Source: Bugula neritina (lineage: Eukaryota > Animalia > Bryozoa). Taken from it: a stretch of DNA of 64,000 bases. Of the stretch, positions 9,684 through 58,162 are shown piece after piece. A program made the translations under genes and the position numbers. Every line of letters starts with the position of its first letter. Positions within the stretch are counted from its first letter, which is position 1. The stretch lies in NCBI GenBank assembly GCA_964035545.1, contig OZ037772.1, positions 9,665,150-9,729,149 on the forward strand, given 5' to 3'. The notes under the pieces were generated by a model. That model ran no database searches and was not told where the DNA came from. It was given only the letters and a program-made list of their open reading frames with translations.

Positions 9684-12600
9684 ATGGAAGAAGAGTTGTC
9701 TCCTCCAAGTTGTATTCCAGGTGGGAATATTCTGTACATTATTTGTTATAAAATATATATAACTTTGTTTGACCTACTTATTCTAGATATACAATCCTCA
9801 ACAAGGAACTATTCTACAAATATTTTTATGGGTCATTAATTAATTGATGAAGTTTTGTGATTGCAACAACCAATGTCTATATAGATGTTCCATTAGTAAG
9901 TGAGTAATGATTTGTATTTTGCTGGAAAATGAAAATACGCAACACCTTATGATACCATAAATTTTAAAATAGGTCAAGTTTTGTGTAGGCAATAGTTTAT
10001 AATGAGGCATCATATTTATTACATTTTTACCTACAAAGCAACGTTGTAGTATTGAAGTATATCATTATATAACATATCTATAATAGTGGTATATGGTTTT
10101 AGATTTTTATGTTTTATGCAGTGCTTTGTATTATTTTGGTTTTTGATTTTGTAGATGGGAATTCTGAAGTACAGCGTGGGTTTACTGGTTAGTATTAAAT
10201 ATAGACCTGGTTGCCTTCAGTTACTGTCAGAGTTAAAGTTCACTTGCGTACAGCACTGTTAAAAATTTAAATAGGCTTTTTACCAATGTTTTCAGTAGTA
10301 ATTTATAGTATAGAATTATGCACCAGTGGTCTAGGGGTTAGAGCATTGGCTTAGTAAACACAAGGTCATGGGTTCGAAACCCTGTAAAGGCTATTATTGA
10401 TGTTAGGAAGAGTATCCAGTCATAATTGTTCCTGTGCCTCATCTAAATAAGCCCTTAGCCCGATTAAAAAACCCTTTCCATCAGGAAGTTCTCTCAAAAA
10501 GATAGTGACTAGTAACTGGTGTGAGATTAAACGATGTTTCGTCTCAATTGCAGCATCTTTTGTAAACCGTTTTTCAAGAAGCTTCAAAAGAACTTCGTGG
10601 TTAATAATTTAATTTCATCTTTCCTTGAACCCTGTATTTTTTTCTCTGTGTTGTGTCATGACCCAGATAATATTCATGCTATAGCCACTCCTATTATTCC
10701 ATGTACATTTGGAGTTGTGTTATCCATTATGGTGTAGCTACTGAGCTTCACTTGCCATTCATATATCTATATGCAGTCGTTTAACAATGTTTTCCTAACT
10801 GCTGTGATTTATTGCTGTGATGTATGAATCAACTTATTTCTCTGTTGATAATTTTTTAATTAAATTTTATTTGTAAAGTTTCCACAGTGTATAACTATCC
10901 TTTCTATACTAGCTGCCGCGCTGCCGTGAGTTTAGCAATATCACCTTGATGTTTACAGCCTCCTTAGGTGAGAGGAGCTTCTTGGGCAGAGGGAGTTTCG
11001 GCCGTGTGTTCAGGCAGTATGATGAACAGAACCAGCGGTTTCTCGCCTCCAAAGAAATAGATCTGGGAATGGTGACTGAAAAAGAGTATGCTGAGGTATA
11101 GGTAGTTTATTGGTGCGTTCCCGGTTTCCATAGCAACAACAGCAGGCAAACCACTAACAACGAGACAAGGGATATTTAGTGTTTTAAACAGTAAAGATGT
11201 TTACTCACAGTGTTGTATTGCGCTTGGCTCGGCTCCCAATTGAGTCAATTATGCTTGAAGTTCTAAACTAATTTCATACATAATTTGAAGACGAAAACAT
11301 TTTTACTGTTATCTTCCCCCTCCTGCATCTGGATGAATATTTTATCGAGATTTTCAAAGTTTGTTGTGTTTCTGTCTATTAAAAGTGCACAAAAAATCGG
11401 GTTTTAATATCTATCACTTGCAGTAATGGAAAGTTGGGAAAAGCCTGTGTTCTTGATCAAAATTGTAGCATAGCAATTTTCTCCAGAAAATATCAACCTG
11501 ACTATCAAAATCTATGAAGAAACTTAAAGAACTTGGGTTATTCAACTTTCTCCACTACTGCGCCTAAATACTATTAATTTAGGCAAATATAGTAAGCATA
11601 TTCTACCCTAGTGCAGTGCTATATTTTGTATACATCTTACAGAGAATCAAAAAGGCAGAAAGAGAAGTGTATGCTATGAACAGACTCAAGCATCCACATA
11701 TTGTCGAGTGTTTTTATAATGAGATCAGACAAGGTGTCTACGGTCCAGGTTAGCTGACACTCTTTCAGTTACTCACTTTTTTGTCTTTCTCTGTTTTTAA
11801 ATAGTTTCAGTCTCGCTGCATCTGTTATTATTATGTTATGTGAATTGAATTATTACATTTGATTCATATTGAGGCTTGTCATCAATTTATAAACAAATTT
11901 CACTTTTATGTCTTGAAGTAGAAGGAAATCATGTTCATCCAACAGTCTGTAGCATAAATATGTGGTAGTGGAGCTTTATTGTTCAAAAATATGCATCCAT
12001 CAGTTATTAATGTGGGCAAGTGTTGTTGTGGGTAGAGTATATAGATGGGTGGAGTATATGGATGGGTGGAGTATATGGATGGGTGGAGCTTATGAATGGG
12101 TGGAGTATATAAATGGGTGGAGTATATGAAAGGGTGGCGTATATAGATGGGTGGAGTATATAGATGGGTGGAGTATATAGATGGGTGGAGTATATAGATG
12201 GGTGGAGCTTATAGATGGTTGGAGTATATAGATGGGTGGAGTATATAAATGGGTGGAGTATATGGATGGGTGGAGTATATAGATGGGTGGAGACTATTTG
12301 TAGACGAATAGGTTTACTTATGCTTATTACATCATTTATAATATGATTGAATAGCTATTTTGTTGCCTATTTTAAAAAGGAAAATATAATATATTGTGGG
12401 CATGATTAGAATAGAAAACTTTCACATAGATACTTGAGGCCCAGACAGATGGAGCGAAACGTCAAATTTCAGCCATTTTCAAAAACGCCAGAGCAGAAAA
12501 ATAATTTACATAGTTTAATCGTAGTCTAATGTGGAAAGAAATAATTTTGCTCAGTTTGTGACTGCATATAGACAAAACAAAATGGCCGACATTTCATTTT

Positions 12601-15600
12601 CATCTTACCTACTTGCATACTTATTCAAATTGACAAGTTTAACACAAGTAAGATTTATAAAGCTATAGATTAGTTGTGATGCCATCACTAATAGCATCTT
12701 ATTACTAATAGATTCAAAGCTCATGTGCATTTACATGGAGTATGTATCGGGAGGGTCCGTGAAGGACTGGTTGAAAAAATATGGCGCTTTCAGTGAGGCC
12801 AGAACTAAGAGATACACTTTGCAGATGCTAAGTGGTCTCCTATATCTACATGAACAACGGTTTATTCACAGGGATTTAAAGTGTAAGTCGATGGGTTGTT
12901 TTTATCTCTGTCTGTCTTCAAGTCATCTGTATGTCTACTACTTGAGTGTTAGCAGACGTCTGATGTTAGGGAATGAGTCATTGTTTTTCTTTTCATCTGT
13001 AGTGTAGAAACCAGCCATTGGTTTGGTAAGTTTAATTTTTAAAATTATTTTCAGTTACCTCATGCTTCTACAAAAAAGCTTTTCAACTGCAAGTGATGCT
13101 ATTTAAGTATTTTTAAACATTTCCTTGTGAAAAAGTAAAAATTGTGTAGAACTATTTTATTATAAAAATTGTGTCAGGACTACTTTACAGCTGCTAATAT
13201 ATGTTTACAACTGTGTGTGTTTTGCAAGCGTTGATTCAGCAATAGCTTTTAGCTAATACTAAGAGCTCATTGCCTAGTAACTACTACTGAACAGTGAGTT
13301 TGAGGACGTTTGCACTTAACCAGGAAATTTTCTGTTTTACTTGTTAGTTTAGTCCTTAAGTTTCACCCGTGGTTGCTTCATTACATAGTAGAGAAATGCT
13401 GCTAGGTTTCACAATTTACATCTGTTGTTATATCTACTTTTACACCTACATCTAAACCTACTTTTAAATCTAACTTTGCACCTGCTTCAACACCTACATT
13501 TACATCTACCTTTACACCTACTTTTACACCTACCTTGCACTTACTTTTACATTTACATTTACCTTTAATATCACAATCAGTAGACTATTTTATTTGTATT
13601 GCAGAAGCATAACCTAACAGCATCCTATGATATAAATGGAGATACACAAAATTTGTGTTATTATTTATTTTCCTTTCCTGATTTAGGTTCAAACATGCTG
13701 TTTGGTGAAGGAGACAGCATCAAGCTGGCAGATTTTGGACTCTCGAAGGAAAGTCTTTGCTCAACATATGAAAGTAAAAGGACACTACACACAGAGGCTT
13801 GTGGTACAGCTCATTATATGGCACCAGAAGTTATGGCTGGAGAGGAATATGGCCGCAAATCAGATATTTGGTACGTCCATTTTTCCATTTTAGAAATGGT
13901 AGCATTAAGCTCTATAGAGTTAAATTGCTTAAATTACTTGTTTTCTCACCAGGAGTGCTGGAGCTACTGTGGTGGAGATGTTGACCACACAACCACCCTG
14001 GTATCAGCTGAAAGATTTCCAAGTCATGTACAAGATCAATTTGAAATCAGAACCTGAATATGTCCTTGACTCTAGTCTAAGTCCTGAAGTTAGAAATTTT
14101 TTGAATGTGATATTCAACTATGACAGCCGAAGTCGGCCTTCGACTGAGGAGTTGTTGCAACATGATTGGCTAAATGACCTTGAACTTCCAGCAGGTGATG
14201 GACATAATTTAATTTTGTGGCTTTGTTCGTAAATGTATGTTGATGGAAGTACATCCAGTTATACTAGTTAGTTGTCGTCCGCCATGATACTTTATCAATT
14301 AAATGTTGAAACACATTTAAATTATTTAAAAATAAAATTTTAATATAAATAAAATAACTAGAAGCTAATTAAAATGTTTTTCAAGACAAATTCAAACTCA
14401 ACTCAAAGTTTTGAGTCACTTTAGATATAGATTCATTACCCTAAGACCAGGGTAATTGAGAAATATTTTCTTCTAGTTTGTATTCTAAAGACTTACTCAC
14501 ATGCCAATGTAGTTTATTTTTCCACCCGATCATTGCACAAGGTTGGCTAATAAATTATACTAATTATCAAACTGTCTAAATTGGACAGAATACCATGTTT
14601 AGTCATGTGACTAGACATTCTATCAGCTTAACTTGCAGTTCATCGGTTGTGTTTATAAAAGTGTAGCTCTCAGCCTTGCTCTCTGTATTCTGGTGTCATT
14701 CTGGTGGTTTCCGGAAAGGTTCTAGAAAGATCTGGTGCCCGATAGGTCCTGGTTCCATCAGACTTCTGGTTTCATGACGTTTTCTGGTGCTGTAAGGTTT
14801 CTGGTTCTACAAAGATTCTGGTTCCCAAAAGGTCTTGGTTCCATGAGGTCTCTGGTGCCATACGGGTTCTAGAAGAGGGTTTGAGTTCCACTGGAAAAAA
14901 TTTTTTTTATAAACCTGCACATCCTTCTTAGCTGTATTGCTGATACATTTTATCTGTGATGTAGATGAGGATGTAATGGATACAGATCTTCTAGAGAATT
15001 TTCCAGAAAGAGTCAGCAATTGCTCTCCCTGTGATGTGGTGCGTTTGTTCTGCATTCAATGGTTACTAATGAAATATATTTCAACTGTTCCATGGAAAAT
15101 ATTATTGTTTTCAAAATGTTGTTTTTTGTTGAGTAACAGGAAATTAAGGGAACTTTATTACTGTATATGAAACGATAATGGTAATTGCTAAGATGGTTAA
15201 ACAGGTATTGTCAATTGAACCAAAATAAAATCTAAATTACTCAATAATTGCAAATGTTTTGGTGTAGTTGGTCCCGCTGGTGGCAGACAATTTCTAATCT
15301 AGCTATTTATTTCTTATCTCATTCTTTTAGGGAGTCCAGAAAGATGAAGAACAGAGCCCAATATATCGTTCTCTTTCAATTCCTTCTCTTTCCAGTTGTG
15401 TCTATGAAGATGTGAATTACGGGTACTTTAAATCACCCAACTATGAGGTGCTTCAAAAAGTATGTTATTTTTTCTTTTAAAATATGTTCTAGCTTTAATC
15501 TGATTTGTAATTGATGCGTTCCCTCTATATCTTACTAAGCTGCCGGTCCTGAAATCTTAATTCATGACATATAGAATATACCATATTTAATTCACGGATC

Positions 15601-18173
15601 TGTTGAATACAACCATGTTATCCCACATCCCACATCCACAAGCTACAAAATGGGGTCTAAGCCCTTCTCCCGCCCCATGGATTTTTGTTAGGAATAGATC
15701 GGGGAGGCAGGCACTGTATTTTGGTTTCAACTACGACATTAGATTAAAAATTTAAATATCTGCAGGATAAAATAATTTTACTAAAAAACTCCATTTGTCG
15801 TTCAACCTGCTCTTTTATCACAAAGGATATTTTTATTTGGAGCACTTTTCATATTTTTTATAGAAATTAACATGTGAGAATTTTTATTTCAATTATTAAA
15901 GCAAAGCAATAGAAAGAAATTCCTTCAGAGGGTAAAACAACTCTTTACTAAAAAGAAAGCCAGTAAACCTGTCAGAAAACGTGCAGTTGAGAAAGCCACC
16001 ATGACTGAGCCGGTAGACTTGGGTTCAGAAGATTATGCCATAGTTAGTGAGGAAGGCTCCTCCCTTGTGCCGCAATATCACTATAGCGCCAGTTCTTCAC
16101 TGCACGACTCATACGGATATGAAACCCCAGGTACATGTAACCATTGCAGACATGTAGAAGCTGTTAGTATTTGTAGCAACAATTATAATCATATAATAGA
16201 GTAATATCACTATTATATTATATAATGTTATTATATATTTATATATGTTATATAATTATATAATACATTGTTGTACATTATACTATTTAAAATATCATGC
16301 TTTAGTAGCTTACACAAATAACGGCTATTCCAGAAATGTTTTTAATGTATTATGTATTGATATTATTGTATTATAATATATTAAATACTGGTATTACTTT
16401 ATTATTATAATTATGTTATAATATGTGCTGATATAGTATATTATGTTACACACTGATATCACATTGTTATTGTAGTAAACAATGTACTGATATATGCTAT
16501 AATATTATTATAATATATTTTATTATGTATTGATTTTAGTTATGCTAATAAACTATTATCTGAGTCAGCCAATTAGAATGTATCTGTAACTCTGCAATTT
16601 CAGACCTACTAGCCAACCAGTCTCCATACATCAACGTCCAGGGTTCAGCAGACGATGATGTGGAGACAACTCTCATGCAGACAAACCTTGGTGTATACCA
16701 ATTTACAAGTGATTATATTATTATATATTATTACATAATAATATTCTATTGTATTATAATGCAGTATTTTATTGCAATATGCTATATTATGTTTCTATGT
16801 AATATATTGATATATGTATATTTTATTGACCTCCAGATTTTTTTTCATTCACTAAAGCAACATGTATGTTCAAAGCCATCGCTATACAGAACAATTAAAA
16901 AAGCTAATCTTGGACGTAACTTGCTATGGCAATGTACAGCAGCTTAGAAACTTTTTTATTTCAAGCAATAAATTGGGTTTTATTTAAAAGTAGTTATTTA
17001 CTGCATTGGTGGAAAGTTTTATTTTATTGTGAGGTAGTTTAACTGTCTGAATTTAACTTTAGTTTGAAACTCAGTTGTGGCTAGTAACAAATTATTTTTT
17101 TCTTGAGGTGCATTTATATTGGAGTACTAAGTTGCGATTAATTTTACCATGTTAACACATTTACATCTAAATTAAGTAATTAAGAAATGCCGATATCTGC
17201 AACGGTTTATCATTTCCTTATACTATTATTATGAAAAAGTCATCACAAGGAAATGATTTTAAGGAGGGGCTTCACAATGCAGCTTTTCACCTTGACCAAA
17301 TTGAATTTTTGACTGAAGATCGTGAATGTATCAGCGCACCCTTACAGTTTCAGTTCCTATAGCTATAGCTAGCTGTAGCACAGTTTAATATATTTATATA
17401 GTTATAATGGACCTACTTTATTTATTGTAGACGAACCAGATAATGATGACACTGTATATATCAATGTACCAGACTTCACACAGAAAGCTGTAACAAGCAA
17501 TGTGGACACTGCACGTACTCTGGAGAAAGTACCGGAAGTAATCATCAACTCGGGTAATTGCTGAATTATTTCACCCCCTCCCCCCCCAAAAAAAATATTT
17601 CAAATTTATTGCGTCTAATTGTTTAAGTCAGCTTTAAGCTTGTTGTATTGTGTCAGTTACCAATAACATTCGATGAAAGTCAGCAATAATTACTATTAGT
17701 TTTATAGTATTGCAAACTTCAGTGCCGAATGAAATACTCGTCAGCAAAAGTTTCGTTATAAAACAGAATAATTTGAGCATTCAACCCTCAAACAGTCTGT
17801 AGATAATATATAAAAATATTTTCATACTGTGTGGATGTATTATGAATTCTTTAATTAATTGTGCAAAATTTTTTTTAAGAGTTTGTCTCCCTTGCTCTTT
17901 GTCATGTTATGGTATTAAGTGGCCCCTTTCGTTTCGTCATAATTTTCTGATGTGTATGCACTAACTAAAATAAAAAAAAACCATACACTATATTCTCAAC
18001 ACTTACATGAAATAATCACATATTACATGCCTAGGGCTATCTAAGCTACTTTTGCTATGCGATTATATCACTTTTAAAAAGAAAACTTGAAAAAAAGTTA
18101 CATCTTTACTTTCTAAATTTTCTAATATATTTTTCCAGAGATGGTGTACGATGTCCCTATGACCACCTCCTAG
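9684..18173 (+). CDS. MAP3K (MEKK2/3-like, STE11 family) Ser/Thr kinase, copy 1, with long tyrosine-motif C-terminal tail (~519 aa)
   Basis: Exons 9684-9720, 10155-10187, 10959-11095, 11643-11748, 12712-12882, 13687-13870, 13953-14194, 14965-15038, 15331-15459, 15929-16130, 16604-16690, 17431-17553, 18139-18173 are all GT-AG and in frame. Motifs: [80 protein letters not shown], close to MEKK3 MEYMPGGSVKDQLKAYGAL / [24 protein letters not shown]. Kinase exons are secure; the first two exons and the tail exons are less certain. Confidence 0.85.
10320..10527 (+). mobile_element. tRNA-Thr-derived SINE
   Basis: Same family; B box gggttcgaaaccc; lies in an intron of kinase copy 1. Confidence 0.85.
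11420..11561. mobile_element. ~150-bp MITE, copy B
   Basis: gcagtaatggaaagttgg ... ttcaactttctccactactgc; homologous to 9151-9302. Confidence 0.55.
12030..12293. repeat. 17-bp minisatellite (agatgggtggagtatat) x~15
   Basis: Head-to-tail copies in an intron of kinase copy 1. Confidence 0.95.
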
Positions 18174-23001: not shown

Positions 23002-25106
23002 ATGGCTGAGGGCTTCTTCACAGCAGATCTCGATTTGAACGGTTTGTGTGATATAATATAACTACTTCTACTCAAGTTAATTGAACTCATCCAAATCTTT
23101 TATCTAAAATAATTTTCTTTCTATCGATCTTTTTTCTGTTCCTGCAGTTGTAAAACTGATAGTATTAAAATTGTCTGTTAGTTATGGTACACCAAAAATT
23201 ATATCTGTTAGAATCGATAAATGTTGATTTTTCTTATGATAAAATAAGTACAGAAAGCATTTAAAATTTTTAAAAAATTGAGACATGATTCGAAATAAGC
23301 CATTGTTGTGTTTCAAAGGAGACTCAAGATGTAGATTATCTATTTAATGGCAAAACAACTATCTTAGCTTTGGGTCTGTTGGTCCTAATGAGACCGATTT
23401 CTAAATTCCTGGCAACATTATTTACCTATGCTCTATAATGGTATTCGTGTTTTTCACAGCTTCTTTTACTACAAAAGAATATCTTGGTAAAGGTAAATTT
23501 GGGAATGTCTACAAACAGTATGATGAATCGAGTAAACGATACATAGCTTGTAAGGAGGTGGACTTGGGTTTGGTTACTGAGGCAGGATATGAGAAGGTAT
23601 TCCTGTATTTATATATATGATTGATTTTATTTGCCATTTAATCAAGGTTTAACATATAGATGTTTTTCTAGTGTAGTTGATGCATTTGTTACATTCTTAC
23701 AACTAAATGCTCAGCTGAAGCTCTTGATATTTGAAAGTTGTTTTCATATGACCCCCCTTGTAATGCCTTGTTGCCTTTTCATCAAGCATATGACTTTTTA
23801 GAATAGTATTTCAAATGGTAGTTTTGAAGTACAGCTTTAATTAAAGAATTTCTGACACACTTTATTTGTGCAGTAGGAGAATATCATTTTTATGTCTTAG
23901 CTGTCATTAAGGATTGAGGATTGCAAATTCAAACAGTTTTGCTTTATAAGAAATTCTGTGTCCATGGCTTTTGCTAGGTTCAGGAGTTTGTGATATTATA
24001 AATACTATTTAGTGGTGACTTTCATTCAATTCTTTTTAGCGAACAGCAATTCATGACTAGACTAGCTTGAAACTTTTAGCTAGTCTAGTGGTTAGGCTGT
24101 GTGTTGCAGCAGCTAAGAATAACATGCAATGATACTTAGCAATAATCAGTATTAATTTTATAACACCATGGACTTTGAACTTAACTTTAAAATTATCAAA
24201 AAGTGATCTAAAATCCCTAATCAATTTGTGCATAATATGTCTGAACACAATTTATCGTAAAACAATCTGTAGAGAGTAGGGAGATGAGGGAGCAGCCGTG
24301 CTTTAACTGTTGAAGTGTTTGCCTATTAAACGTGAAGTCATGGGTTCGAACTCTGACAAAGGCCGTTAGTGATGTTAGGAAAAGCATCCAGCCATAATTG
24401 CTCCTGTGCCCCATCTAAATAAGCATGCTTTAACAAAAGCCCTTGCTATTAGGGGTTTTCTCATAGGGATGGTGACTACGTAAACTTACGTGAGTGAGTC
24501 TGTGTAGAAGATAGCTTAGAAGATATATGTAAATATATTTTATTACTGCATGAATAAATTGTATGTCAGGAAACAGATAATGGCTTTTTAACAAAAAAGC
24601 TAGCCAAACTTTTTTACAATAAAAAAATGCAATAATTATACAAAAAAAAATTGCTAGCTTAGCTATCAATTGAAATGACTGAAAAGTTGTTTGTGCATCT
24701 AAATATAGTATTCAAACAAAAAACCTTACCTATATATCTGTCAAGTGAGATCCAAATGTTGCACTTACTTACAAAATCTAATTTCTAGAAAGTTAAAGAA
24801 GCTATGAAGGAAGTGAGTGCAATGAAAAAATTGACCCATTTAAGTATCGTCAAGTACTATGGGTATAAAGTAATACAGGCCGACCAACGCAACTCAGGTT
24901 TGATAAAATTGAAGTATTAATATTATATGAAATTTGTCCCCAACAAACAATCATTGTTATATATCATTACTATTAGGAACAGTATCCATCTACTATAAAT
25001 ATATTTTAATTCACCTTTTGTTTGTTTCTGTAATATACTTTAGTTGATTTATATTGCTAAAGTATTCTAAGCCAGTATGTTTGCAGTAATATTAAAATTT
25101 TATTTA

Positions 25107-25164
<58 letters not shown>

Positions 25165-26710
25165 CATATTAGAGACTAAAATTCTATGCATTTATATGGA
25201 GTATGTTTCGGGAGGGTCTGTGAAAGACCGTTTGAATAAGGAAGGAGCTTTCAATGAGATTCAGGCTATAATATATACAGAGCAATTGTTACTTGCTGTC
25301 TCTTACCTTCATAAACAAGGTATCATACACAGAGACTTGAAATGTAAGTGGAATTTAAAGTGTTTAAGTAAAACTTGAAATGTAAACTTGCTGTACATAC
25401 AATAAAATATGCTACAAACCTCTCAAAATATTTACTTTTTTTACAAACATATAGAAGAATGTTAATTTAATACTATATTTTTCTATATGTCTGTCATAAT
25501 TTTTATTCCAGGTTCCAACATGTTGCTAAATGGTCTTTTTATCTTGAAACTAGCAGACTTTGGAATAGCTAAGGAATGTCATCATTCAACACTTAACAGT
25601 AGAGGAATGCTACACACTGCTACTTGTGGTACAGCTCACTATATGGCACCAGAAGTTATGGCTGGGGAGGAGTATGGTGGGAAGGCAGATATTTGGTCAG
25701 TTTTCTTCTTTTAGAATAAAAGTATATGTTATTAAATTTCAGCAAGTTTTTAACTTACTACGTAATCCTTCTTACTTTATAAAAGGAGTGCTGGAGCTAC
25801 TGTGGTGGAGATGTTGACCACACAACCACCCTGGTATAAGCTGAAAGATTTCCAAGTTATGTATAGAATTGGACAAAAAGAAAAACCGGAATATGTCCTT
25901 GACTCTAGTCTGGGACCTGAAGTTAGAAATTTCCTGGATGTGATATTCAACTATGATAGTGAACGACGACCTTCGGCTGATGAACTTTTGGGACATTGCT
26001 GGTTTTCTTTCTGTAAACATCTTGGAGGTTAGTGGATAGTCGCAAAACACAAGTTTTATAGTTGTGACTATTATTTAATAAAATATAATTCAATTATACA
26101 TAGTGCCAATGTTGTTTATAACTTCTATTTTATAGCTTACACGTACACTACTTATATATTAAATTATGTTCATTACAACATAAATAATAGTTTTTAGCCT
26201 AGGTTTTGGTAGAATAGTTGAATTTGCTGCTTTGTGTTAGGTTTTTATTACATGTACTAATTAATAAAACCAGTAAATTCTATTGCAACCCAATTTTGGT
26301 ATAATCCGTAAGAATAAAACCAAGTTTGTGTAACTAGAGAAGGAGACAACTTCAAAGAGTGACATTTCCAAATGTTGCACTATTCCGTTCTTGAACTTGT
26401 AAAAACAACCTTTAGTGCATTAGCTGGGCTCAATACATTGTAAGAAATATCGTGTTAATTTCTTTTCTGGGTCTGAGAAAATTTGCAGCTATGTAATGCA
26501 TATAATTTAAATGTGTAAATGATGTTTCATACAAGTAAAGAGCAGACAAATCTAAATGTTATTTTCTGACAATGCATTATACAGCATCTCACTTTTGCTC
26601 TCGTGTAGAACACTTTAGGTAGCCAAGAGTATTAACTAAAATTCCTGTATGTTTGCGTTGCAGTTGCGGCAGAGCAGGCTGTCTCACTTTTACACGCAGT
26701 CTTTAGCTGA
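23002..26710 (+). CDS. MAP3K (MEKK2/3-like) kinase, copy 2 (~309 aa, kinase domain plus 15-aa tail)
   Basis: Exons 23002-23041 (MAEGFFTADLDLN), 23460-23596, 24789-24897, 25173-25343, 25512-25695, 25786-26027, 26664-26710 (VAAEQAVSLLHAVFS*). Motifs [21 protein letters not shown], APE are intact. Unspliced read-through would stop at 26032. Confidence 0.88.
24287..24497 (+). mobile_element. tRNA-Thr-derived SINE
   Basis: Same family; gggttcgaactc; lies in intron 2 of kinase copy 2 and is absent from the paralogous introns of copies 3 and 4. Confidence 0.85.
25110..25161. repeat. (TA)n microsatellite
   Basis: Seen directly; ends about 11 nt before a splice acceptor. Confidence 0.95.
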
Positions 26711-30780: not shown

Positions 30781-33700
30781 ATGGGTGGGGGTTACTCTAC
30801 ATCAGATCTCTCTTTTAATGGTTTGTTTGATATAATATAACTACTTTTATATATTTTAATTGAACTCATGCAAATATTTTAGCTAATATGTTAGCATGAA
30901 GCAATTTCATGTCTATACTTTTGGGCTCCTGCATTTGTAAGACTTGTATTTATTGTTTGGCATTTATGGGTCACAAATGATCAAGTCTGTTAGAAATAAT
31001 AAGCAATGAATTTCCTTGTGATAAAATAAGTACATCAGGCATTCAAGATTACTAGAAACTTGAGACATGAGACTGAAAGAAGTCATTATTGTGTTTCAGG
31101 AGATACAGATTCTCCATTTAAATGTAAATAAAACTGTTACCAGCTTCAAGTATGTTAATTCCGAATTTTAGATTTTTAGCTACATTATTTAGTTGGATTT
31201 TAGATTTTAGATTCATTGCTACATGAGTTAGCTGTTGCTCTATAGTAGTTTATATTGTTTTACAGCTTCTTTCACTAGCAAAGAACTTCTTGGTAAAGGC
31301 AGTTTTGGGTTTGTCTACAAAAGGTATGATGAACTGAGTAAACAATACATAGCCTGTAAGGAAGTGGACTTGGGTGTGATTACTAACACAGAATATCAGA
31401 GGGTATTCATTTATTTATGTGACTTCACTTCCTGTTTAGAAGGTTAACATATACATGTAGGTGTTTTTCTAGTGTAGTTGATGCAGTTGTTACATTCTTA
31501 CAACTAAAATGCTCAGTTGATGCTTTTGATGTTTGAAAGTTGTTTTCACCTTAACTGCCTTTTTATCAACCATATGATTTTTTAAAAGCATCATTTCTAA
31601 CTTTTCTGTATGTAAATCATCAAGCTTGTAGTTTGAAAGTATGGCCTCAACATTCCTTGGCACATTATTTTTGTAGTCATAAAATATTCATTTAAATTTA
31701 ACTATCTGCAGACTGTTGGAGGCTTGTATGTTCAAAAACTTTGTTTTAGAAGAAATTTTCTGCTCATGCTTTCGTTAGGCTCTTGAGTTTGTAACATCAT
31801 AAAATTAAATACTAGTTACTGCTGACTTTCATTTTTGTTGTTCTTATCTACTGTAACTCACAGTTTAATTATTTGGTTGGCTTGAAACTTTTCGCTTTGA
31901 GCTTTTAAGGCAGTTCAGTGAATAACTTGTGTGTTGCAGCAGGTAAAACTATCAGGCTTTATATATCTCTTGAGTGAGATTCATGAAATACTTCAACTGT
32001 TGCATATAGACAAAATTTTGTTTTCTAGAAAATTGAAAGAGCCATGAAAGAAGTGAGTGCAATGAAGCGATTGGACCATGAACATATAGTCAAGTACTAT
32101 GGTTATGAAGTAATACAGGACCAACACAAATCAGGTTTGATAAAATTACTATCTGATTATGAGTTTTGTGCTGATATGTCCAATAAATTATTACTATTAG
32201 ATTAAGCAGTATTCATCTACTATAAATATGTTTCAACTCATCCTTTGTTTTCCTGTGTCATATTTTAGTTGATTTATATTGTTGACGGACTCTATTCAAT
32301 GCATTAGCTAGTATATTTATAGTAATATTCAATCTTTATATCACCAATAGAGACCAGGGTGCTATCTATTTATATGGAGTATGTCTCGGGAGGGTCTGTA
32401 AAAGACCGTTTGAATAAAGAAGGAGCTTTCAAGGAGACTCAGGCTATAAGATATACCTGGCAGATGTTACTTGGTGTTTCTTATCTTCACAGACAACGTA
32501 TTATACACAGAGATTTGAAGTGTAAGCATTAAAATTGAAAAGAGATTTTAAGTGTTTAAGTTATAGGATTGGAATTTTAAGCTTTCTATACACAGAAAAA
32601 TCTGCTGTGAACATTCTACAACATCTAATTTTTATTACAAACTAAGCAAAGGGTGTTAATTTGATAATATTATTTTTTAAATTTCTCTCATCTGTTTTTT
32701 TCAGGTTCCAACATGCTGCTAGATGATAATGATGAGATAAAACTAGCAGACCTTGGGATAGCTAAAGAATGTCATCATTCAACGCATGAAAGTAAAAGAA
32801 CACTACACACAGAGACTTGTGGTACAGCTCATTATATGGCACCAGAAGTTATGGCTGGAGAGGAGTATGGCAGGAAGGCTGATATTTGGTAAATTCTTTT
32901 TTTCATAGAGCTCTAAGAAAAACCTGTTTTCAAGTTTTAATGAGTTTATATTTTTCTACATAATCCTTCTTACTCTAAACAGGAGTGCTGGAGCTACTCT
33001 AGTGGAGATGTTGACCACACAACCACTCTGGTATAAGCTAAAAGATTTCCAAGTTATGTATAGAATTGGACAAAAAGAAAAACCTGCATATGTCCTTGAC
33101 TCTAGTCTAGGACCAGAAGTTAGAAGTTTCCTGGCTGTGATATTCAACTATGATAGTGAAAGACGACCTTCAGCTGAGGAGCTATTAGAACACGACTGGT
33201 TGCATGGTTGTAGATTTACTAAAGGTTAGTGTAGAGTTACTGAATCTTAGTGTAGAGTTACTAAATACAAAGATTTCGTTGGGTTGTTTGAAGGCTTTCA
33301 ACTTAATGTTGGAAGATTATGCCACTGCCTTGCTTTAACATATTCATTGCTGTAGTCAAGCTTTTTTAATCTGTTCCAGCTGTTTGTTTTCAGTATGGAA
33401 TTTTGCACCATTCTGAAAAAAGTTACAAAATAGTTTAATTACGCTGTTGACCTACATTTTCATTTGGTCTAAGACTAAATGTATGTTTCGATTTATATAT
33501 TGATGGCAGGAATATTTTAATTAAGAAAAATATAAGCTTGAATATAAAAACTGGTGTGCCCAACTATAATTAACATATAGTGAAAATAATTAGTGGGGCA
33601 AATTGTACTTGGTTCAACTCGCCTCACTTCCTATGCGGTTTAACTAGTCCCACACTTTCACGGTACAAATTATTGCTGTGACTGAAATATTTCTGCAACT

Positions 33701-38980: not shown

Positions 38981-41900
38981 ATGGCTGAGGGTTACTCTAC
39001 AGTAGATCATCCCTCTTTTAATGGTTTGTTTGATATCATATAACTACCTTTATATTTTTAATTGAACTCATGCAAATATTTTAGCTGATATGTTAGCATG
39101 AAGCAATTTCATGTCTATACTTTTGGGCTCCTGCATTTGTAACACTCGTATTTATAGTTTGATATTTATGGCGCACAAATGATCAAGTGTGTTTGAAATA
39201 ATAAGCAATCAATTTCCTTATGCTAAAATAAGTATATCAGGCATTCAAGATTACTAGAAAATTGAGACATGACATTGAAATGAGTCATTATTGTATTTCA
39301 AGAGAGACTCAAGGTGCAGATTCTTCATTTAAAGGTAAATAAAAATATTCTCAGATTCAAGTATATAAGCAATGCTATAATGATTCTAGATTTTAGATTC
39401 ATTGCAACATGAGTTAGCTGTTGCTACTTGCTATATAGTAGTTTATATTGTTTTATACAGTTTCTTTCATTGGTAAAGAACTTCTTGGTAAAGGTAGTTT
39501 TGGGTTTGTCTACAAACAGTATGATGAACTGAGTAAACAATACATGGCTTGTAAGGAGGTGGACTTGGGTGTGGTTACTGACACACAATATCAGAAGGTA
39601 TTCCTTTATTTATGTGACTTCATTTTCTGTTTAGAGTTTCAAGATAAATGTTTTTCTAGTGTAGTTGATGCAGCTGTTAGGTTCTTAGAACTAAATGCTC
39701 AGCTAATGCACACGATGTCTGAAAGTTGTTTTCATTTGAGCATCTAATAGCCTCATTGCTTTGACATTTTTTTATCAAACATTTGTAGCTTTCCTTTATG
39801 TAATTCATCAAGCTTATAGTTTTTCAGTACAACTTCAATTGATAGATTTTTCATCAAAAATAATTTGCAAGTATTTATTGACATTTAAACACTATAAAAA
39901 AGTAAACTAAATGACTAAAGATCTTTGAACAGAAACTTTCTGCATCTGTTGAGTGAAATTCATGAAATATTTCAACTGGTACACTCAAAAATCTTTATTT
40001 TAGAAAGTTAAAGAAGCTATGAAAGAAGTGAGTGCAATGAAAAGATTGGATCATTCTAATATAGTCAAGTATTATGGATATGAAGTCATACAGGACCAAC
40101 ACAAACCGGGTTTGATAAAATTGATGTATTAATATGAGTTTTGTGCCCATATGCACAATAAATTATTATTATTAGAAACAGTATTCATTTACTATATTTT
40201 AATTCATCTTTCGTTTTTATCTGTGTCCGAGTATATTTAATTCATACTGTTGAAGTACACTGCTCAATGCATTAGCCACTATGTTTATCTAGTAATCCTA
40301 ATTTTGTTTCATTTTCAATAGAGATCAGGGTAGCATGTATTTATATGGAGTATGTCTCCGGAGGGTCTGTGAAGGATCATTTGAACAAAGAAGGAGCTTT
40401 CAAAGAGACTCAGGCTAAAATATACACACTACAGATGTTAGAAGGGGTCTCCTACCTTCACGGACAACGTATCATACACAGAGACTTGAAATGTGAGTAA
40501 TGATTAAAGTTTACTACCCACAGAAAATACTCCATAACATTTTCAAAATATTTACATTTTATTACAAATGTATGGAAAGATGTTGAGTTGGTAATAATTT
40601 TTAAATATCTGTCATCGGCTTTTCAGGTTCCAACATGCTGCTAAATGGTTGTTATATCTTGAAACTAGCAGACTTTGGAATAGCTAAGGAATGTCATCAT
40701 TCAACACTTGACAGTAAAAGAACTCTTAACACTTCTACTTGTGGTACAGCTCATTATATGGCACCAGAAGTTATGGCTGGAGGGGAGTATGGCAGGAAGG
40801 CTGATATTTGGTCAGTTTTTTTTCTATAGCTTATATTATAACAACATGTTCTTTTATTTCATTGAGCTTAGAACTATTATATAGTTATTCTTCTTTTCAA
40901 CAGGAGTGCTGGAGCTACTCTAGTGGAGATGTTGACCACACAACCTCCCTGGTCTAAATTTACTGATTATCAAGTCATGTACAGAATTGGACAAAATGAA
41001 AAGCCTAAATATGTCCTTGACTCTAGTCTAGGACCAGAAGTTAGAAGTTTCCTGGATGAGATATTCAACTATGATAGTGAAAGACGACCTTCGGCTGATG
41101 AGCTTTTGGGACATGACTGGTTTGGTTAGTTTAGAGTTGCAATAAGCTTATTTAATATTATTGACTAAAGCTTTATTAATAATTGGATTGCTATCACTCT
41201 TTAACCTTTGTTTATATACTTGTATATATTATTATGCTCATCAAAAGCTAAGTAACATTTCTCTTGATTGTGCTGCCATCATTATTTAACCTTTATAAAT
41301 ATACTAGTATAATACATTATCATGCTTATTAAAAAAATAAATTATAATTTAGTTTAGGTTATGACAAAGTGGTTGAATGCTCTGCTTTGTAGTAGATTTC
41401 TTATCATATATATATAATATGTAGTTATAGAGCCAGGTAATTATGTTACAACCAATTTTTGGTATCTGGATTGTTATAACTATCGAAGAAGACAATTTCA
41501 AATACTATTTTCCAAATGACACTGCAACTGTTGTTATAGTGTCTATTTTTCACGTGTTGAATTTTTTTTAGATGATCTCCTGGGCTTAATATATTACAAG
41601 GTTTGTTGATTCTCTTCATTTTTTGAATGTGGAAAAATTTCGAAGCTAGTAAATTTATTATAATATGGGTCATTTTACTTAATTTATTACACACTGGATA
41701 TCTTCAGTTTTCAGCTATTTTTCACAATTTAACTGCTAATGGACATGGGTTTTTTGGCCAAAACTAGTAAAACATTAATAAATACACTTAAATAATCAGA
41801 GTTATTTTTAATTTTGCTTCATTTCCCATGTTTTTTTTCCTAATTATTCAGTTACTTTTGATTGCGGACCTTTACGGTTTTTTCGTAACGGTCCGCACTC

Positions 41901-42098
41901 CTAATAAGCTAAATATATAAGAAAAAAGATGGGAAATCAAGCAAAATTAAAAAGATCTTTAATTGTTTCGGTGTATTTATTGGCGCTTTATTAGTTTTGG
42001 GCAAAAAGCCCATGTTCATTACCAGGTAAATTGTGAAAAATAGCTAAAAATGGAGATTTCAGTGTGTACTAATTTTGACTTGCTTCTATGCAGAGTGA
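38981..42098 (+). CDS. MAP3K (MEKK2/3-like) kinase, copy 4 (~288 aa, kinase domain only)
   Basis: Exons 38981-39023 (MAEGYSTVDHPSFN), 39461-39597, 40004-40109, 40322-40492, 40627-40810, 40904-41124, then either read-through to the stop at 41129 or splicing to 42094-42098 (E*). Motifs GKGSFG, MACK, HRDLKCSN, DFG, APE are intact. Confidence 0.88.
41690..42066. mobile_element. Fold-back (whole-length palindromic) MITE with TA TSD
   Basis: TA|CACACTG ... CAGTGTG|TA; arms are complementary over essentially the full length with centre tgcggacc-tttacg-gttttt-tcgtaa-cggtccgca; absent from the paralogous flank of copy 5. Confidence 0.88.
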
Positions 42099-43194
42099 TG
42101 AGTATGTCGAGGAGGCAATGCGAGAGGTGTGTTTAGCACTCGTGAGACACCAAAAGTCTGTCTAGAAGATGCGGCGACATAAGGCCACTTGCATACTACT
42201 GTAGGCTCTGCGGCATATACAAGCTCTACTAAACTGCTACTACATATACAAGCTCTACTAAACTGAAGCTGAACCATAGTATGTTGTATTTGAAGTGACA
42301 CAACATCTATAGTGTTAGGAGAATCTCAAAGACCAAACTCTTATTATCCAAATTTACCAGCCAGTGTATAACTTCTGCTCTTAACACAAAGCTAACATGA
42401 CATGCAAATTAGTTACTATATATGTTGGTACACTTACTAATACTCGATACATTCTGGTCACATACTAACCACAGTTCTATCTGCACCTCTCCCTCACTTG
42501 ACATTTGTAGTTGTATGCTCCTGACTTTATGTGTGTCATTAGAGATAATCCACACCTACACTCCTGTGGCGGTGGTTAAAACCTGGCCTTTACTCAAATT
42601 CTTACCAGCTACTTTGCTACTATCCAAAACAGCATATTTTAGAATAGTTTTATAAACTTTGTTCAACTGTATATTATGGCTTTATATTGTACTTTGTTTT
42701 CTATATTTAACTATTGGTCACTAAATACTCATTCTCTACCAGGTATTTAAAAAGCTTCAATAAATTGTAATTTTAGTACAATATACCCTATTGCAATGGT
42801 TATTACCATAAGAATTGAAGTGGTTTATGTGCCAAGAAGATAGATTTGGCTGTGGATATTTTTGTTTTGTGTTTTTAAGTTTTATTTTTCTACTTTTTTA
42901 CTTTACTTTTTCATAACGTTGTTTATATTCTATGTTTATACACAACTCAGATAGTTTTTCTAGACCTCTGCACATTTATTTTTTTTAAGCATCAATTATT
43001 TTTGGAATTATTTTTTCTTTATGCTGTTATTTTATATTTTGTATCAATAGTAACAAATATTCCGACCAATATTTTTTTGTCATATTTTATATTTTAATAC
43101 GATATCGGCCTTACAAAATGTGTACCATTTTGATCATTTTTCAATTATTCATGCCTAATAAATATTGGATAAGCCAAGCCTGTTTCCAAAATAC

Positions 43195-43451
<257 letters not shown>

Positions 43452-44960: not shown

Positions 44961-45357
44961 CTCCTAACTGGGTTTGCAGAGAAACATAGCGGTGACAGCC
45001 TGATATTGTTGAGTCGCACTTGAAACAGAAATAAACTTTCACATTTTCCCTGAGCTTTGGGAACATAAAGGTATTATAATTCATCTATTATTTACTTTTG
45101 GATTAACTACAGTAGCTATGGGTAGTTAAACTCATCTAATTGCATAATACTAATAGTAATATCAAATGACAAATTGAAATTGAACTTATTCATTTTCATT
45201 TTGATTTTGTGCAGTCATTCATTTTCAACTTCGAGTTATATTTTTACTTATAGTGATAGTCATTAATCATTATTATTATCAATGTCATTATGATTATTAT
45301 TTATCTTGTGAAACTCTTGTTTAGTAATAGTTTCTTTATATATATTTTATTTACTAT

Positions 45358-47172
45358 CACTGCGTTTCCATGAAGGCGAATGAATGCGTACGAGTGCCCG
45401 TACGGATTACATCGAAGGAAAAACCACACGTTCCTATGCAATCCGTACGAAGTTATCTTTTCTTTGCAATTGTGACGGCTGAACTAAAATGATAATTAAT
45501 ATGGCCAACTTTGAGTTTGAGTTCATGCACAACGGCAATTTTTTAATTCTGTCCCCACTTTTGATAGATTAAATCAATCAAATACACAAACTTTGAGTCA
45601 GTTCATTTAAACTAAAAAAGCATAAACCAATGAAAGCATAAAGTATTTCTCGATCGATAAACTTAAGCTTAAAAGTAAATCAAATTTTCAAAATGAAAAT
45701 AGCTGTCAACTTATTTTTAGCCTGGGAAAGCTTTGGCTTACGGAAATTTTTTTACAAATTTAAGATGATTAGTAACCATTCTAAATAATAGCAGCTATGA
45801 TAAATAAAATAATTTAAATTTTTAAAAGCCGAAGTACACTTTAGCGTAGGTTGTAACAAGTTTATAATTATTGTTTACATCGCGTAACTATGTAACTAGC
45901 CGCCACAAATGCTGATCTCTGCCTCCGGCACAAAAGGTTTCATTCGATTTAACCGAAGGAATCATTTCCATCATGTGCATAATGCGAAGGAAAATTTTCA
46001 TCGAAGGAGCTGTTCGGTGTAATTTCGATGCAACTGTTTCCATAGGACGAATGAGAAAATCCATTCGCATAATGCCCATGACACATTACAGTCGAAACTC
46101 GACTGTGACGGCCATTTTAGAGCTGCTTGCGCATACCTTCAACGTCACATCCTACTTTTTGCTGGTCACACTACAGTTTTCTACAAACGATGAAAGCTGA
46201 TGCCCATGACACACTACAGTCGAAACTCGACTGTGGCGGCCATTTTGAAGCTGCTTGCGCATACCTTCAACGTCACGTCCTACTTTTTGCTGGTCACACT
46301 ACAGTTCACTACAAACGATGAAAGCTAACTGTCTCTAGCCCCGCAGTAAACTTTTAATCAATAGGAATGCCATGTCGAACTTTCATCGCATCGCTAAAAA
46401 CTGACAGTTGCGTTCAGAAATCAGACAGTTGTGACGTCACAGGGGTCAACGCTTAGCCTCGAAAACGCGTTCAAAATGGCGTTTAGACTGTAGTGTGGCA
46501 GCCCCATAACTGTCTCTAGTCCCGCAGTAAACTTTTAAACCAATAGGAATGCCATAACTCAGTTTTTGCAGTATCCACAGTGACCAGCAATCAAATTTAG
46601 CGCAAATAATTGAGATTTACTAGCATAATTTAATAAGATTTACTAGTTATTTTTATTCTAATTGACTAGCTTAAATTATTCGAAATTACTAGCTTTATTC
46701 AATGAGATTACCTAGCTTTATTCAAGCTCATTCACTAGCCTAAAGAACTAAATGCGCTAATAAAATTCAATCAAATTAGAAAAATAAATATTATGCAGAT
46801 AAAATTTAGCAAAATTTATCTAATAAATACTTATTTTCATAATTTATTAAGATTTTCATACATAACTTCATCATAATTATTTTAAAAGTAAAATAATATA
46901 ATTTTTGAAGAACCAAATCAAATAATAATAATGCTCGCTAGTAGCATGTGGAATAAGTAAAAGCACTAACCAATCAGGGCTTACCCGGCCAGTCAGTGAT
47001 TGGCTAATCGCTCAACTTCAGCGTTCAGCGTTCGACATGTCGAACTTTCATCGCATCGCAAAAAACTGACAGTTGCGTTCAGAATTCAGACAGTTGTGAC
47101 GTCACAGAGGTCAACGCTTAGCCTCGAAAACGCGTTCAAAATGGCGTTTCGACTGTAGTGTGGCAGCCCCAT
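45358..47172. mobile_element. Composite of non-autonomous DNA-transposon sequences with duplicated termini
   Basis: CpG-rich island; ~128-bp unit in tandem at about 46072-46199 and 46200-46327; ~138-bp unit at about 46371-46508 and 47036-47172; imperfect TIRs (cacactacagtcgaaac / gtttcgactgtagtgtg). No transposase ORF. Confidence 0.7.
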
Positions 47173-48569: not shown

Positions 48570-48980
48570 GATGTCACCTAGTTAGTGAAAGTCCTGCCTG
48601 AGATCATCAGTTGCAATCTCTTCCTGTTCCATTTTATTCCTCATTTGCTGGTCAACGCACCTCAAATTTTGTAATATCTGCACTGTGGAATAAGTTGCCA
48701 AAATTTTTAAAGATTATACAGCCACTTGGTAAATTTAAAGTGGAATTGAGGCATCACCTCTACTCTGTTGAGTGATCTGTGGTGCCTTCTATGGTAATGC
48801 CGACTTTGGGCCCGCGTACCACTAGCCATGCTATTTCGCACTGGGCCTCATCATCACTTCCGACAGCTTATTTTGATATACTGTTGTTTGTTACTATGTT
48901 TCTTTTCTAATTGCTTGTTCTGCTCTTGTAACTTATGCTAGTTGTAAAACACTATGTTATGATGAAAATACACACACACA
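48570..48980 (+). mobile_element. 5'-truncated LINE 3' end
   Basis: Reads ...AGQRTSNFVISALWNKLPKFLKIIQPLGKFKVELRHHL*, the WNxLP...FKxxL end typical of non-LTR ORF2; followed by a 3' UTR and a (CA)n tail. Confidence 0.75.
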
Positions 48981-49675: not shown

Positions 49676-52357
49676 ATGGCTTGCATTGGAAATGATGTCA
49701 ATGACAAGTTTGCAGGTATAGTGAATATTTGGATCTTGAACCTATTGCTAAAAATTTTCTTATCTCATGACTACTGCTTTTGAATTCAATATAATGTTAT
49801 CACCGTCCCGCTACCCGAACAGGACAAAGTGGAAATAGGTGAAAAAAAATTATTATCATCATAACATAGCAGTATCATAGCTTCATGGCTAAGTTTGTGT
49901 TTTACAGTTTCGATTGCCAGTAGAGAAAAACTGGGTGCCGGTAGCTTTGGGACTGTGTTTAAAGTTTTTGATATGCTGAGTAAAAGACACATGGCTTGCA
50001 AGGAAATAGACCTTGGTATAGTTAAGGTCAAGGAACATCAGAAGGTATTAGCTGCAATAGTTTATGTTTGTGAAGTTATAATTTTACTATACTAATAGAG
50101 TTTATATCTCTGTTTTGTATCAAAGTCTATAATCAGTGCATAGGCCTAGTAGTAGTTCTAACACTCCAAGTATATGCATATATACTTACAACTATTTGCT
50201 AGAGTTATGTAGTAATTATTCTTTGACATATTCAGCCATATAGCACGGGGGTGGCCAAACGTTTTGCTAGTAGGCCAAATTTTCTAAATAAGGTTTTTTT
50301 GCTTATGTAGCTAATTTATGGATTTTTACATTAACCAATAATGATACAGGTAATAAACACAGGAAATAGGGAGTATGAATTCTAATATATGATGACTTTA
50401 TAGTTTATAAATCAGAGTTCAATTTGAAACCTTAATAGTAAATTTTTAAAAAATGGGGAAGTGCTTTATGTATATCGACAGAACCAGATAAGTGACATTT
50501 AAATTCTAGGAACTTCTGAAAGCAATGAGAGAAGTGAACGCAATGAATAAACTAGATCATGTAAATATAGTGAAGTACTTTGGTTATGAAATGAAGGATG
50601 GCAACCAGGGTCCTGGTACGTGTATTATTCGCTGGATGCATAACAGTGTGTGTGTGCGTGCGTGTGGGTGTTTATATATTATTAGCACAACAAAGATGAT
50701 CAAACTAGCTGCGAGTTGAAATATTAATTTGTATATATTAGACTTGTTGGTAATTTCTTCATCATTCTTATACTATTGTGAGATATCAATATTTTATATT
50801 CTTTATATTCTAACAGAGTTTAGAATCCTATGTATTTATATGGAGTATGTTTCGGGAGGGTCTGTGAAGGACCGTTTGAACAAAGAAGGAGCTTTCAACG
50901 AGACTCAGGCTAAAAAATACACATGCCAGATGTTACTTGGTGTCTCTTACCTTCACGAGCAACATATCATACACAGAGACTTGAAATGTGAGCCCTGGTA
51001 ACTGTGCAGTTATTATTTTCTATTTTGTTTTTTATTGTAATCGTTTGTCATATACTATGTTAAACAATTATAGTTACAGTGATTAGTGAAATGGCTAAGC
51101 AACATGTAAACTTCTTTCAGGTTAAATAATGTTCTCAATGAGACAAAAATTTGATATTTGCATTACACACTTTGTATATTGTAGGCTCCAACATGCTGCT
51201 AGATAGAGAAGATAACATAAAACTAGCAGACCTTGGAATAGCTAAAGAATGTCATCATTCAACACATAAGAGCAATAGAACTCGTTACACTGCTACTTGT
51301 GGTACAGCTCACTATATGGCACCAGAGGTTATAGCTGGAGAGGAGTATGGCAGGAAGGCAGATGTTTGGTCAGTTTTCTTTCTATAGCTTATAACAGCAT
51401 GTTCTTGCGTTTCATTGAGATTAGAACTTATTAAATATAGTCATTCTTCTTTTCAAAAGGAGTGCTGGGGCTACTCTGGTGGAAATGCTGACCACAAAAC
51501 CTCCCTGGTCTAAGCTAAACGATTTTCAAGTCATGTTCAGAATCGGAATAAAGCAAAAAAAACCTGCATATGTCCTTGACTCTAGTCTAGGACCAGAAGT
51601 TAGAAGGTTCCTGGATGAGATATTCAACTATGATAGTGAAAGACGACCGTCGGCTGATGAGCTTTTGGGACATGACTGGTTTGGTTAGTTTAGAGTTGCA
51701 ATAAGCTTCTTTAATATTATTGACTAAAGCTTTATTAATAATTGGATTGCTATCACTCTTTAACCTTTGTTTATATACTTGTATATATTATTATGCTCAT
51801 CAAAAGCTAAATAATATTTCTCTTAGTTGTGCTGCCATCATTATTTAACCTTTATTAATATACTAGTATAATACATTATCACGCTTATTAAAAAAATAAA
51901 TTATAATTTAGTTTAGGTTATGACAAAGTGGTTGAATGCTCTGCTTTGTAGTAGATTTCTTATCATATATATAATTATGTAGTTATAGAGCCACCAATTT
52001 TTGGTATCTGGATTGTTATAACTATCGAAGAAGACAATTTCAAATATTATTTTCCAAATGACTCTGCAACTGTTGTTATAGTGTCTATTTTTCACATGTT
52101 GGATTTTTTTTAGATGATCACCGGGGCTTCATATATTACAAGGTTTGTTGATTCTCTTTATTTTTTGAATGTGGAAAAATTTCGCAGCTAGTAAATTTAT
52201 TATAATATAATGAAAAACAAATTCTTTCCTTTACAGATAAGGAGCAAAAACTGCATATAATAGGAAATCTTTTTAATTATGTATTACAGTTTCACTTTTT
52301 GTCATGAATATGAAGCTAGGTGGTCAGCTAATTTTGACTTGCTTCTATGCAGAGTGA
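49676..52357 (+). CDS. MAP3K (MEKK2/3-like) kinase, copy 5 (~288 aa, kinase domain only; DLG variant)
   Basis: Exons 49676-49715 (MACIGNDVNDKFA; 40 nt as in copies 2 and 3), 49908-50044, 50510-50615, 50817-50987, 51185-51368, 51460-51683, then stop at 51688 or splicing to 52353-52357 (E*). Motifs GAGSFG, MACK, HRDLKCSN, LADLG, APE. Confidence 0.88.

Positions 52358-54415: not shown

Positions 54416-58162
<3,747 letters not shown>

Follow-up and report, generated by a model that had tools for sequence, protein, structure and literature searches.

Tandem genes for predicted minimal MEKK2/3-like kinases in the bryozoan Bugula neritina

The window analyzed here is a 64-kb stretch of AT-rich animal DNA (GC 32%) from Bugula neritina, corresponding to C8:9665150-9729149. 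It contains five kinase units on the + strand (c1 to c5), which were located by a motif scan for pairs of exons carrying the G-loop and the HRD motif. Our preferred reading, held with moderate confidence, is that they are five separate genes in tandem, that each starts with a short ATG exon and codes for a free-standing catalytic domain of the MEKK2/3 type (STE11 group) without an N-terminal regulatory domain, and that they are part of a Bugula-lineage family with at least 15 members and act as minimal MAP3K-type kinases. Genome searches covered the 216-Mb assembly that holds contig C8.

Anatomy and maintenance of the five kinase genes

The conserved coding blocks, five per copy, were delimited by comparing the copies with each other, and their AG/GT borders were fixed by nucleotide alignment. 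In every copy there are five core exons, named A to E, and their AG/GT borders are canonical. Their sizes are 137, 106 (109 in c2), 171, 184 and 242 nt (221 in c4 and 224 in c5), and the phases are common to all copies: exon A starts in phase 1, the junctions A/B, B/C, C/D and D/E are in phases 0, 1, 1 and 2, and exon E ends in phase 1. From the start codon to the end of the kinase core, c1 spans 9684..14194 (+), with exon 1 at 9684-9720 and core exons at 10959-11095, 11643-11748, 12712-12882, 13687-13870 and 13953-14194; its model rests on splice borders, phases and an orthologue on the sister-lineage contig L010. Borders, phases and a conserved start exon define c2 (23002..26027, +; exon 1 23002-23041; core 23460-23596, 24789-24897, 25173-25343, 25512-25695 and 25786-26027) and c4 (38981..41124, +; exon 1 38981-39023; core 39461-39597, 40004-40109, 40322-40492, 40627-40810 and 40904-41124). 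The borders and phases of c3 (30781..33224, +; exon 1 30781-30820; core 31266-31402, 32029-32134, 32351-32521, 32705-32888 and 32983-33224) are accompanied by an exact DNA unitig match in sequencing run X1, and c5 (49676..51683, +; exon 1 49676-49715; core 49908-50044, 50510-50615, 50817-50987, 51185-51368 and 51460-51683) is defined by borders and phases. The joined cores are 273-280 codons long without an in-frame stop, and the encoded proteins are 60-83% identical in pairwise comparison. Joined exon models, with all joins read from the sequence, went into the local alignments, the dN/dS values and the tree.

The exons of c3 tile positions 2-263 of the 263 in the Pfam Pkinase model (PF00069). 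GxGxFG, the lysine in A-C/S-K, the helix-C Glu, HRDLK..N and APE are present in all five copies, and the P+1 Met and the APE Pro are kept as well. The initial annotation had described five same-strand paralogues with the same phases, near-identical exon sizes and intact catalytic residues, and this description is borne out by the exon resolution, the motifs and the absence of stops. It had also called the kinases MEKK2/3-like. When the exons were compared one by one with solved structures, MAP3K2 was the first kinase match for the HRD exon (E 5.5e-13) and the sole solved kinase in the match lists of all three exons tested, which agrees with that name, as does the tree described below.

Among the five cores, pairwise dN/dS is 0.16-0.42 and dS is 0.35-1.6. 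Metagenome contigs from a sister lineage align to positions 11078-18667 of the window at 81-85%. Over 231 codons of exons B-E, c1 and its orthologue on L010 differ by 24 synonymous and 18 non-synonymous codon changes, giving a roughly estimated dN/dS near 0.24, and the changes in exon D are mostly silent. DNA unitigs of the independent run X1 match c3 exactly, at ~60-70x in the unique parts, which is single-copy depth. Because of the dS and dN/dS values and the retained c1 orthologue, we regard c1-c5 as maintained genes and not as assembly duplicates; the divergence between copies and the exact independent match of c3 likewise agree with the initial view that the array is unlikely to consist of assembled haplotypes.

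The array has nevertheless turned over. A block at the 3' side of c4 (40625..43200, +), extending from exon D to 2.3 kb downstream, is ~90% identical in DNA to 51183-53446 of c5. The match is visibly higher for ~0.55 kb after exon E, with few mismatches in the alignment, and the 5' halves of c4 and c5 are much more diverged than this block. This pattern fits a recent gene conversion or a partial duplication. Such turnover, together with a dispersed copy on C5 and the lack of expression evidence in the searches of sequencing runs and protein representatives, is what one would expect if the copies were recent duplicates, silent or decaying and intact in looks only. We consider this highly improbable, since the five copies have no stop or frameshift in ~840 nt each despite the dS between them, their dN/dS values are low, and the sister lineage retains c1, the differences in exon D being mostly silent.

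Short N-termini and variable C-termini

The acceptor of exon A is conserved and in phase 1, and therefore an upstream exon is required. The duplicated unit reaches just 0.7-1.2 kb upstream of exon A. Upstream of exon A, each copy has a mini-exon with an ATG, which comprises 12-14 codons plus 1 nt and is followed by a phase-1 GT donor. In c2, c3, c4 and the dispersed C5 copy, this start exon is located ~420-450 bp upstream of exon A, and the four have in common the ATG, an open frame of 13-14 codons, an in-frame indel of 3 nt and a G/GTTTGT phase-1 donor. An in-frame stop was read 2-8 codons upstream of the ATG in c2, c3 and c4. The start exons of c1 (9684-9720) and c5 (49676-49715) are alike in size and phase and have CAG/GT donors. 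The predicted proteins of c1-c5 thus have ~20 residues ahead of the first glycine of the G-loop, which fits the initial estimate that they start 13-25 residues before the kinase domain.

A mini-exon 110-170 bp upstream of exon A was also considered as the general site of the start codon, and it was rejected as it has an ATG in c4 only and lacks a GT donor in c2. In alignments, a possible phase 1-1 cassette mini-exon lies between exon 1 and exon A of c3 (31100..31123, +), with homologous stretches at ~23319-23349 in c2 and 39303-39334 in c4, the c4 stretch alone having an in-frame ATG and the c2 stretch lacking the GT donor.

We searched for N-terminal domains that could precede the kinases. 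A PB1 profile, a model insensitive to split domains, had one match in the whole genome and none in the window. The HEPN_DZIP3 profile (PF18738) matched on C6 only in the genome-wide search, with no match in the window, and DUF4559 (PF15112) had no match in the genome. A tblastn search with the N-terminal regions of 41 relatives found nothing in the window. The proposed lack of an N-terminal regulatory region is thus supported in that none of PB1, HEPN_DZIP3, DUF4559 or the N-terminal regions of the relatives is encoded in the window. Among the short JGI contigs of the sister lineage (L010, L011, L013 and L014), none extends upstream of exon A.

At the other end, exon E of c2-c5 ends in phase 1 at a conserved G/GTTAGT donor, and read-through leads at once to TAG. 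For c4, a candidate terminal coding piece of 5 nt (2 nt + TGA) is located at 42094..42098 (+), the alternative being read-through of the exon E donor, which would add Gly before TAG. The corresponding candidate piece of c5 (2 nt + TGA) is at 52353..52357 (+), and its last position is the end coordinate of the array in the initial annotation. By either route the c5 protein ends one residue past the kinase domain. Since the stop comes right after exon E by either route, c4 and c5 are bare kinase domains, with a predicted length of ~290 residues.

The candidate C-terminal tail exons of c1 lie within 14965..17561 (+). The first (14965-15020) has an acceptor in phase 1, compatible with the donor of exon E, and further open stretches are within 15331-15477, 16564-16700 and 17379-17561. 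The stretches carry YEDV and YINV motifs, and in the sister contig they remain open and are conserved, with indels that keep the frame. These exons could instead be a separate gene. The C-terminal tails are variable, as first noted: c4 and c5 stop at the kinase domain, and c1 has conserved, frame-compatible tail exons.

The start exons and stops also bear on whether the five units are separate genes at all. They might be exons of one or a few genes with multiple kinase domains, in which exon E of one unit is spliced to exon A, or to the cassette, of the next. In favor of this, the donor of exon E and the acceptor of exon A are conserved and both in phase 1, and predicted relatives with 2-4 kinase domains per protein are known from Physella and a bird, although in those models tandem genes may have been merged during annotation. 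Against it, every unit has a conserved ATG exon of its own, closely preceded by in-frame stops, c4 and c5 reach a stop right after exon E, and the layout is the same in the solitary copies on C5 and C6. Moreover, the spacers between units are 5-9 kb, whereas the introns inside a unit are 0.08-1.6 kb. Multi-kinase genes, the main structural rival to separate genes, are thus very unlikely in our view.

A Bugula-lineage family and its relatives

Exon E of c3 matches 16 places genome-wide. Beyond the five window copies, these are one copy each on C5 and C6, a further cluster at C8:9.96-10.01 Mb, two copies at C8:9.10 Mb, one at C1:33.27 Mb and, as a distinct gene, C1:8.81 Mb. The initial annotation spoke of a five-gene family, and this has to be corrected to at least 15 paralogues on four contigs. 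In a tree of 78 kinase domains with SH-aLRT support, the 15 paralogues from this genome form one clade (98), inside which the five window copies and the C5 copy form a subclade (99). The 15-member clade is nested in an animal clade of 32 rows (99) that also contains a PB1-bearing MAP3K2-like protein from Priapulus, a MAP3K3-like protein from a sponge, bivalve proteins and the gene at C1:8.81 Mb. That the family is lineage-specific, as had been suggested, is upheld: the clade is private to this genome and kept by purifying selection, and c1 is kept in the sister lineage.

Exon E was also searched against 1.84 billion protein representatives. The close matches were single-exon open reading frames (ORFs) on Bugula-type contigs, and the distant ones, 35-51% identical, were STE11-type MAP3Ks, including 'MAP3K2/3-like' proteins of a priapulid, bivalves, a snail and sponges as well as fungal MAP3Ks. 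The priapulid protein has PB1 ahead of the kinase, and several of the bivalve relatives have HEPN_DZIP3 or DUF4559. A related paralogue has a counterpart with 83-91% identity in the Bugula neritina assembly GCA_010799875.2. A metagenome scan with the exon A alignment found unrelated kinases only. Three distant members, L031, L032 and L033 (C8:9.968 Mb, 9.106 Mb and 9.099 Mb), read HRG, HGD and HRH instead of HRD, and they are likely to be pseudokinases.

MEKK2 and MEKK3 are normally single- or low-copy genes, and their specificity is ascribed largely to the PB1 domain. The initial annotation proposed to look for a separate PB1-containing orthologue, and a canonical-type gene was found at C1:8808277-8809960. 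Its kinase domain is 63% identical to that of the Priapulus MAP3K2-like protein, with which it groups in the tree, and the gene ends shortly past the kinase domain. About 6 kb upstream there is a PB1-like exon that resembles the first half of the MEKK2/3 PB1 (44% identity across 27 residues; E 4e-5, from one pairwise comparison); the Pfam model, run on half-domain exons, did not match the PB1 of this gene, and the Priapulus PB1 region had no match genome-wide. The C1 gene and the family share exactly three intron positions and phases, namely A/B (0), C/D (1) and D/E (2), and the window kinases have one extra intron (B/C). The family is therefore a DNA-level offshoot of such a gene.

Compared with canonical MEKK2 and MEKK3, the window kinases belong to the same clade, are ~39-40% identical to the Priapulus MAP3K2-like kinase domain and show the GT..MAPE signature of the STE group, and in c4 and c5 the kinase domain is likewise at the C-terminal end. 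In contrast, they have neither PB1 nor linker, with ~20 residues before the kinase as opposed to ~270-350. They read HRDLKCSN where the canonical proteins read HRDIKGAN, have an insert of 5-7 residues before beta5 and an activation loop that is ~3 residues longer, and the triad of helix alphaG is F/Y-M-Y/F instead of M-I/L-F. The number of copies also differs, with at least 15 in the family and one for canonical MEKK2/3. In the oyster kinome, STE11 members are mostly single-copy (PMC4883820).

The highest whole-domain identity to the window kinases (40-43%) is found in the 'MAP3K2/3-like' kinases of bivalves that carry HEPN_DZIP3 or DUF4559 (Mercenaria, Sinanodonta, Saccostrea and Mya). These bivalve kinases are in the same 32-row clade and are, like the window kinases, non-canonical lophotrochozoan offshoots of MEKK2/3, with the tree leaving a sister relation unsettled; they differ in their N-terminal domain of 150-250 residues, of which the window has no trace. 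In the tree, the outgroup closest to the family is weakly supported (91) and consists of intronless relatives on long eukaryotic contigs of the metagenome assembly ERZ25072999, some of which are kinase-only (272-296 aa) and one CARD-adjacent (348 aa). In one cluster of them the start is also ~12 residues ahead of the G-loop and the protein stops with the kinase domain, but these relatives are single-exon genes and only 34-36% identical. At L035:4559-4846 and 6001-7047 in that assembly, a CARD ORF is located 1.1 kb upstream of an intronless relative.

Two family members have caspase p20 exons 1-2 kb downstream on the same strand, at C6:13624864-13627029 (-) and C1:33270304-33272730 (+). The catalytic motifs SHG and QACSG of the caspase are intact in the C6 copy. 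These paralogues belong to the family clade of the window copies and agree with them in exon phases and in the phase-1 acceptor of exon A, and they differ in the downstream caspase exons. Among the caspase (PF00656) matches listed, none is in the window, and a search with the C6 copy's caspase exons found no homologue there. In the whole genome, the Peptidase_C14 model has 177 exon-level matches, many of them in tandem clusters (C1:32.8-35.5 Mb, C6 and C7).

Kinase matches on many small contigs of the assembly (such as C206, C147, C105, C66 and C216) are broken almost only by TAA or TAG and hardly ever by TGA. This stop pattern is typical of a ciliate-type code, and the assembly therefore probably includes DNA of an epibiont or a contaminant.

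Possible functions and neighboring sequences

The kinase domain of MEKK2 alone dimerises through helix alphaG (Met567, Ile570 and Phe571) and the activation segment (PMC12780230). The alphaG surface is needed for trans-autophosphorylation and for recruitment of MKK6, and recruitment of MEK5 needs PB1 (PMC12780230). At the equivalent positions c1-c5 have F/Y, M and Y/F, which are all hydrophobic. As the MEKK2 kinase domain dimerises alone, the alphaG positions stay hydrophobic and the P+1 Met and APE Pro are kept, we favor stand-alone dimerising kinases of the MAP3K type. In this reading the family originated by DNA-level duplication of a MEKK2/3-type gene, and it is kept by purifying selection. 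Its minimal kinases may pair via the surface formed by helix alphaG and the activation segment, like the human MEKK2 kinase domain alone. Once paired, they would autophosphorylate in trans and then phosphorylate MAP2K-type substrates docked on the same surface, and the PB1-dependent MEK5 route would be closed to them. Their output might depend on how strongly they are expressed, on their partners and, for some copies, on additions at the C-terminus such as the tyrosine-motif tail of c1 and the caspase exons behind two paralogues. Constitutive activity and control by transcription, as envisaged in the initial annotation, are likewise hypothetical.

Several points weigh against this reading. The DFG motif of c1, c2 and c4 is DLG in c3 and c5. 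The alphaG residues of c1-c5 depart from the near-invariant M/I/F of MEKK2/3, and thus pairing and substrate choice may differ. A kinase phylogeny with MAP3K2/3, MAP3K19 and other STE11 members had been proposed in the initial annotation; our tree places the family inside the MEKK2/3 clade (99), and it has no MEKK1, MEKK4, ASK or MAP3K19 references, the clade label resting on automatically named relatives, the PB1-bearing Priapulus protein, the shared introns and the PDB match. The exon E query of the 1.84 billion representatives found no spliced or annotated full-length protein of the subfamily, and its close matches were limited to single-exon ORFs and a partial Bugula neritina model that represents a different paralogue. 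When sequencing runs were searched for the locus, the one matching run consisted of genomic DNA unitigs and there was no RNA run; because of this, splicing and expression of c1-c5 are inferred only. Finally, with exon E ending and exon A starting in the same phase, read-across splicing between units is possible.

The caspase exons behind two family members (C6:13.62 Mb and C1:33.27 Mb), 1-2 kb from exon E, point to a link with cell-death signaling. The main functional rival to catalytically acting kinases builds on them: the kinase-only proteins might be pairing partners or regulators of the kinase-caspase paralogues, promoting or blocking proximity-driven activation of the caspase by kinase dimerisation, comparable to CARD-only or cFLIP-type proteins. 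The hydrophobic pattern of the alphaG triad is specific to the family, the caspase repertoire of the genome is very large, and some distant paralogues have lost the catalytic Asp of HRD or the preceding Arg, indicating that non-catalytic roles occur in the family. However, all five window copies keep all catalytic motifs under purifying selection, which a pure scaffold does not need, and the kinase-caspase joins are themselves predicted from sequence. We regard such a regulatory role as possible but unlikely. A broader version, which is more speculative and which we hold to be less probable, is that bugulid bryozoans use the MEKK2/3 catalytic domain as the dimerisation and phosphorylation module of a private cell-death or immune system, in which a caspase follows the kinase in some paralogues and the kinase-only genes of the array switch the kinase-caspases on or off via alphaG pairing. 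If true, kinase-caspase pairing would be a route to proximity-induced caspase activation that is free of death folds.

With minimal MAP3K-type kinases as the preferred reading, a selectively maintained 15-copy family without PB1 can be seen as a natural experiment on what the MEKK2/3 kinase domain does alone, with regard to alphaG pairing and substrate choice. The family mixes bare catalytic domains, copies apparently with a caspase or a tyrosine-motif tail, and pseudokinases. The locus generates hypotheses and is not a demonstrated pathway.

The activation loop is encoded by exon D (+ strand; 13687-13870 in c1, 25512-25695 in c2, 32705-32888 in c3, 40627-40810 in c4 and 51185-51368 in c5). 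The Thr before the GT..PE motif is presumably the activating phosphosite of MEKK2/3. Where the canonical MEKK2/3-type rows have this Thr, c1 and c3 align with Glu, c4 with Ser, and c2 and c5 with Ala, in an alignment that is uncertain here because the loop is 3 residues longer.

The initial annotation placed the array in an immune context because of kB-like sites and an IL-17R-like neighbor, and this framing of the locus is not supported. Two kB-like motifs were observed in the window and 1.05 are expected, which is at chance level. The profile of SEFIR (PF08357), the signaling domain of IL-17 receptors, matched on contig C2 only and not in the window, the upstream ORFs have no Pfam match, and the downstream neighbor is a mitochondrial carrier. 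The upstream open stretches at 2382-3416 (+) have 108 and 223 codons, are serine- and glycine-rich without a Pfam match, and probably belong to an upstream gene. The mitochondrial carrier gene is multi-exon (54419-58222, -), with four exons matching Pfam Mito_carr, and it probably continues toward 62 kb.

An Rfam scan of the window had no match. A 17-bp tandem repeat of 15.5 copies is located at 12029-12292 in the B-C intron of c1 and is also present in the sister-lineage contig. Between c4 and c5 (45357-46073), there is a ~720-bp repeat with more than 40 copies in the genome at 85-91% identity, and another copy is found downstream of the c1 orthologue in the sister lineage (L010:3274-3993).

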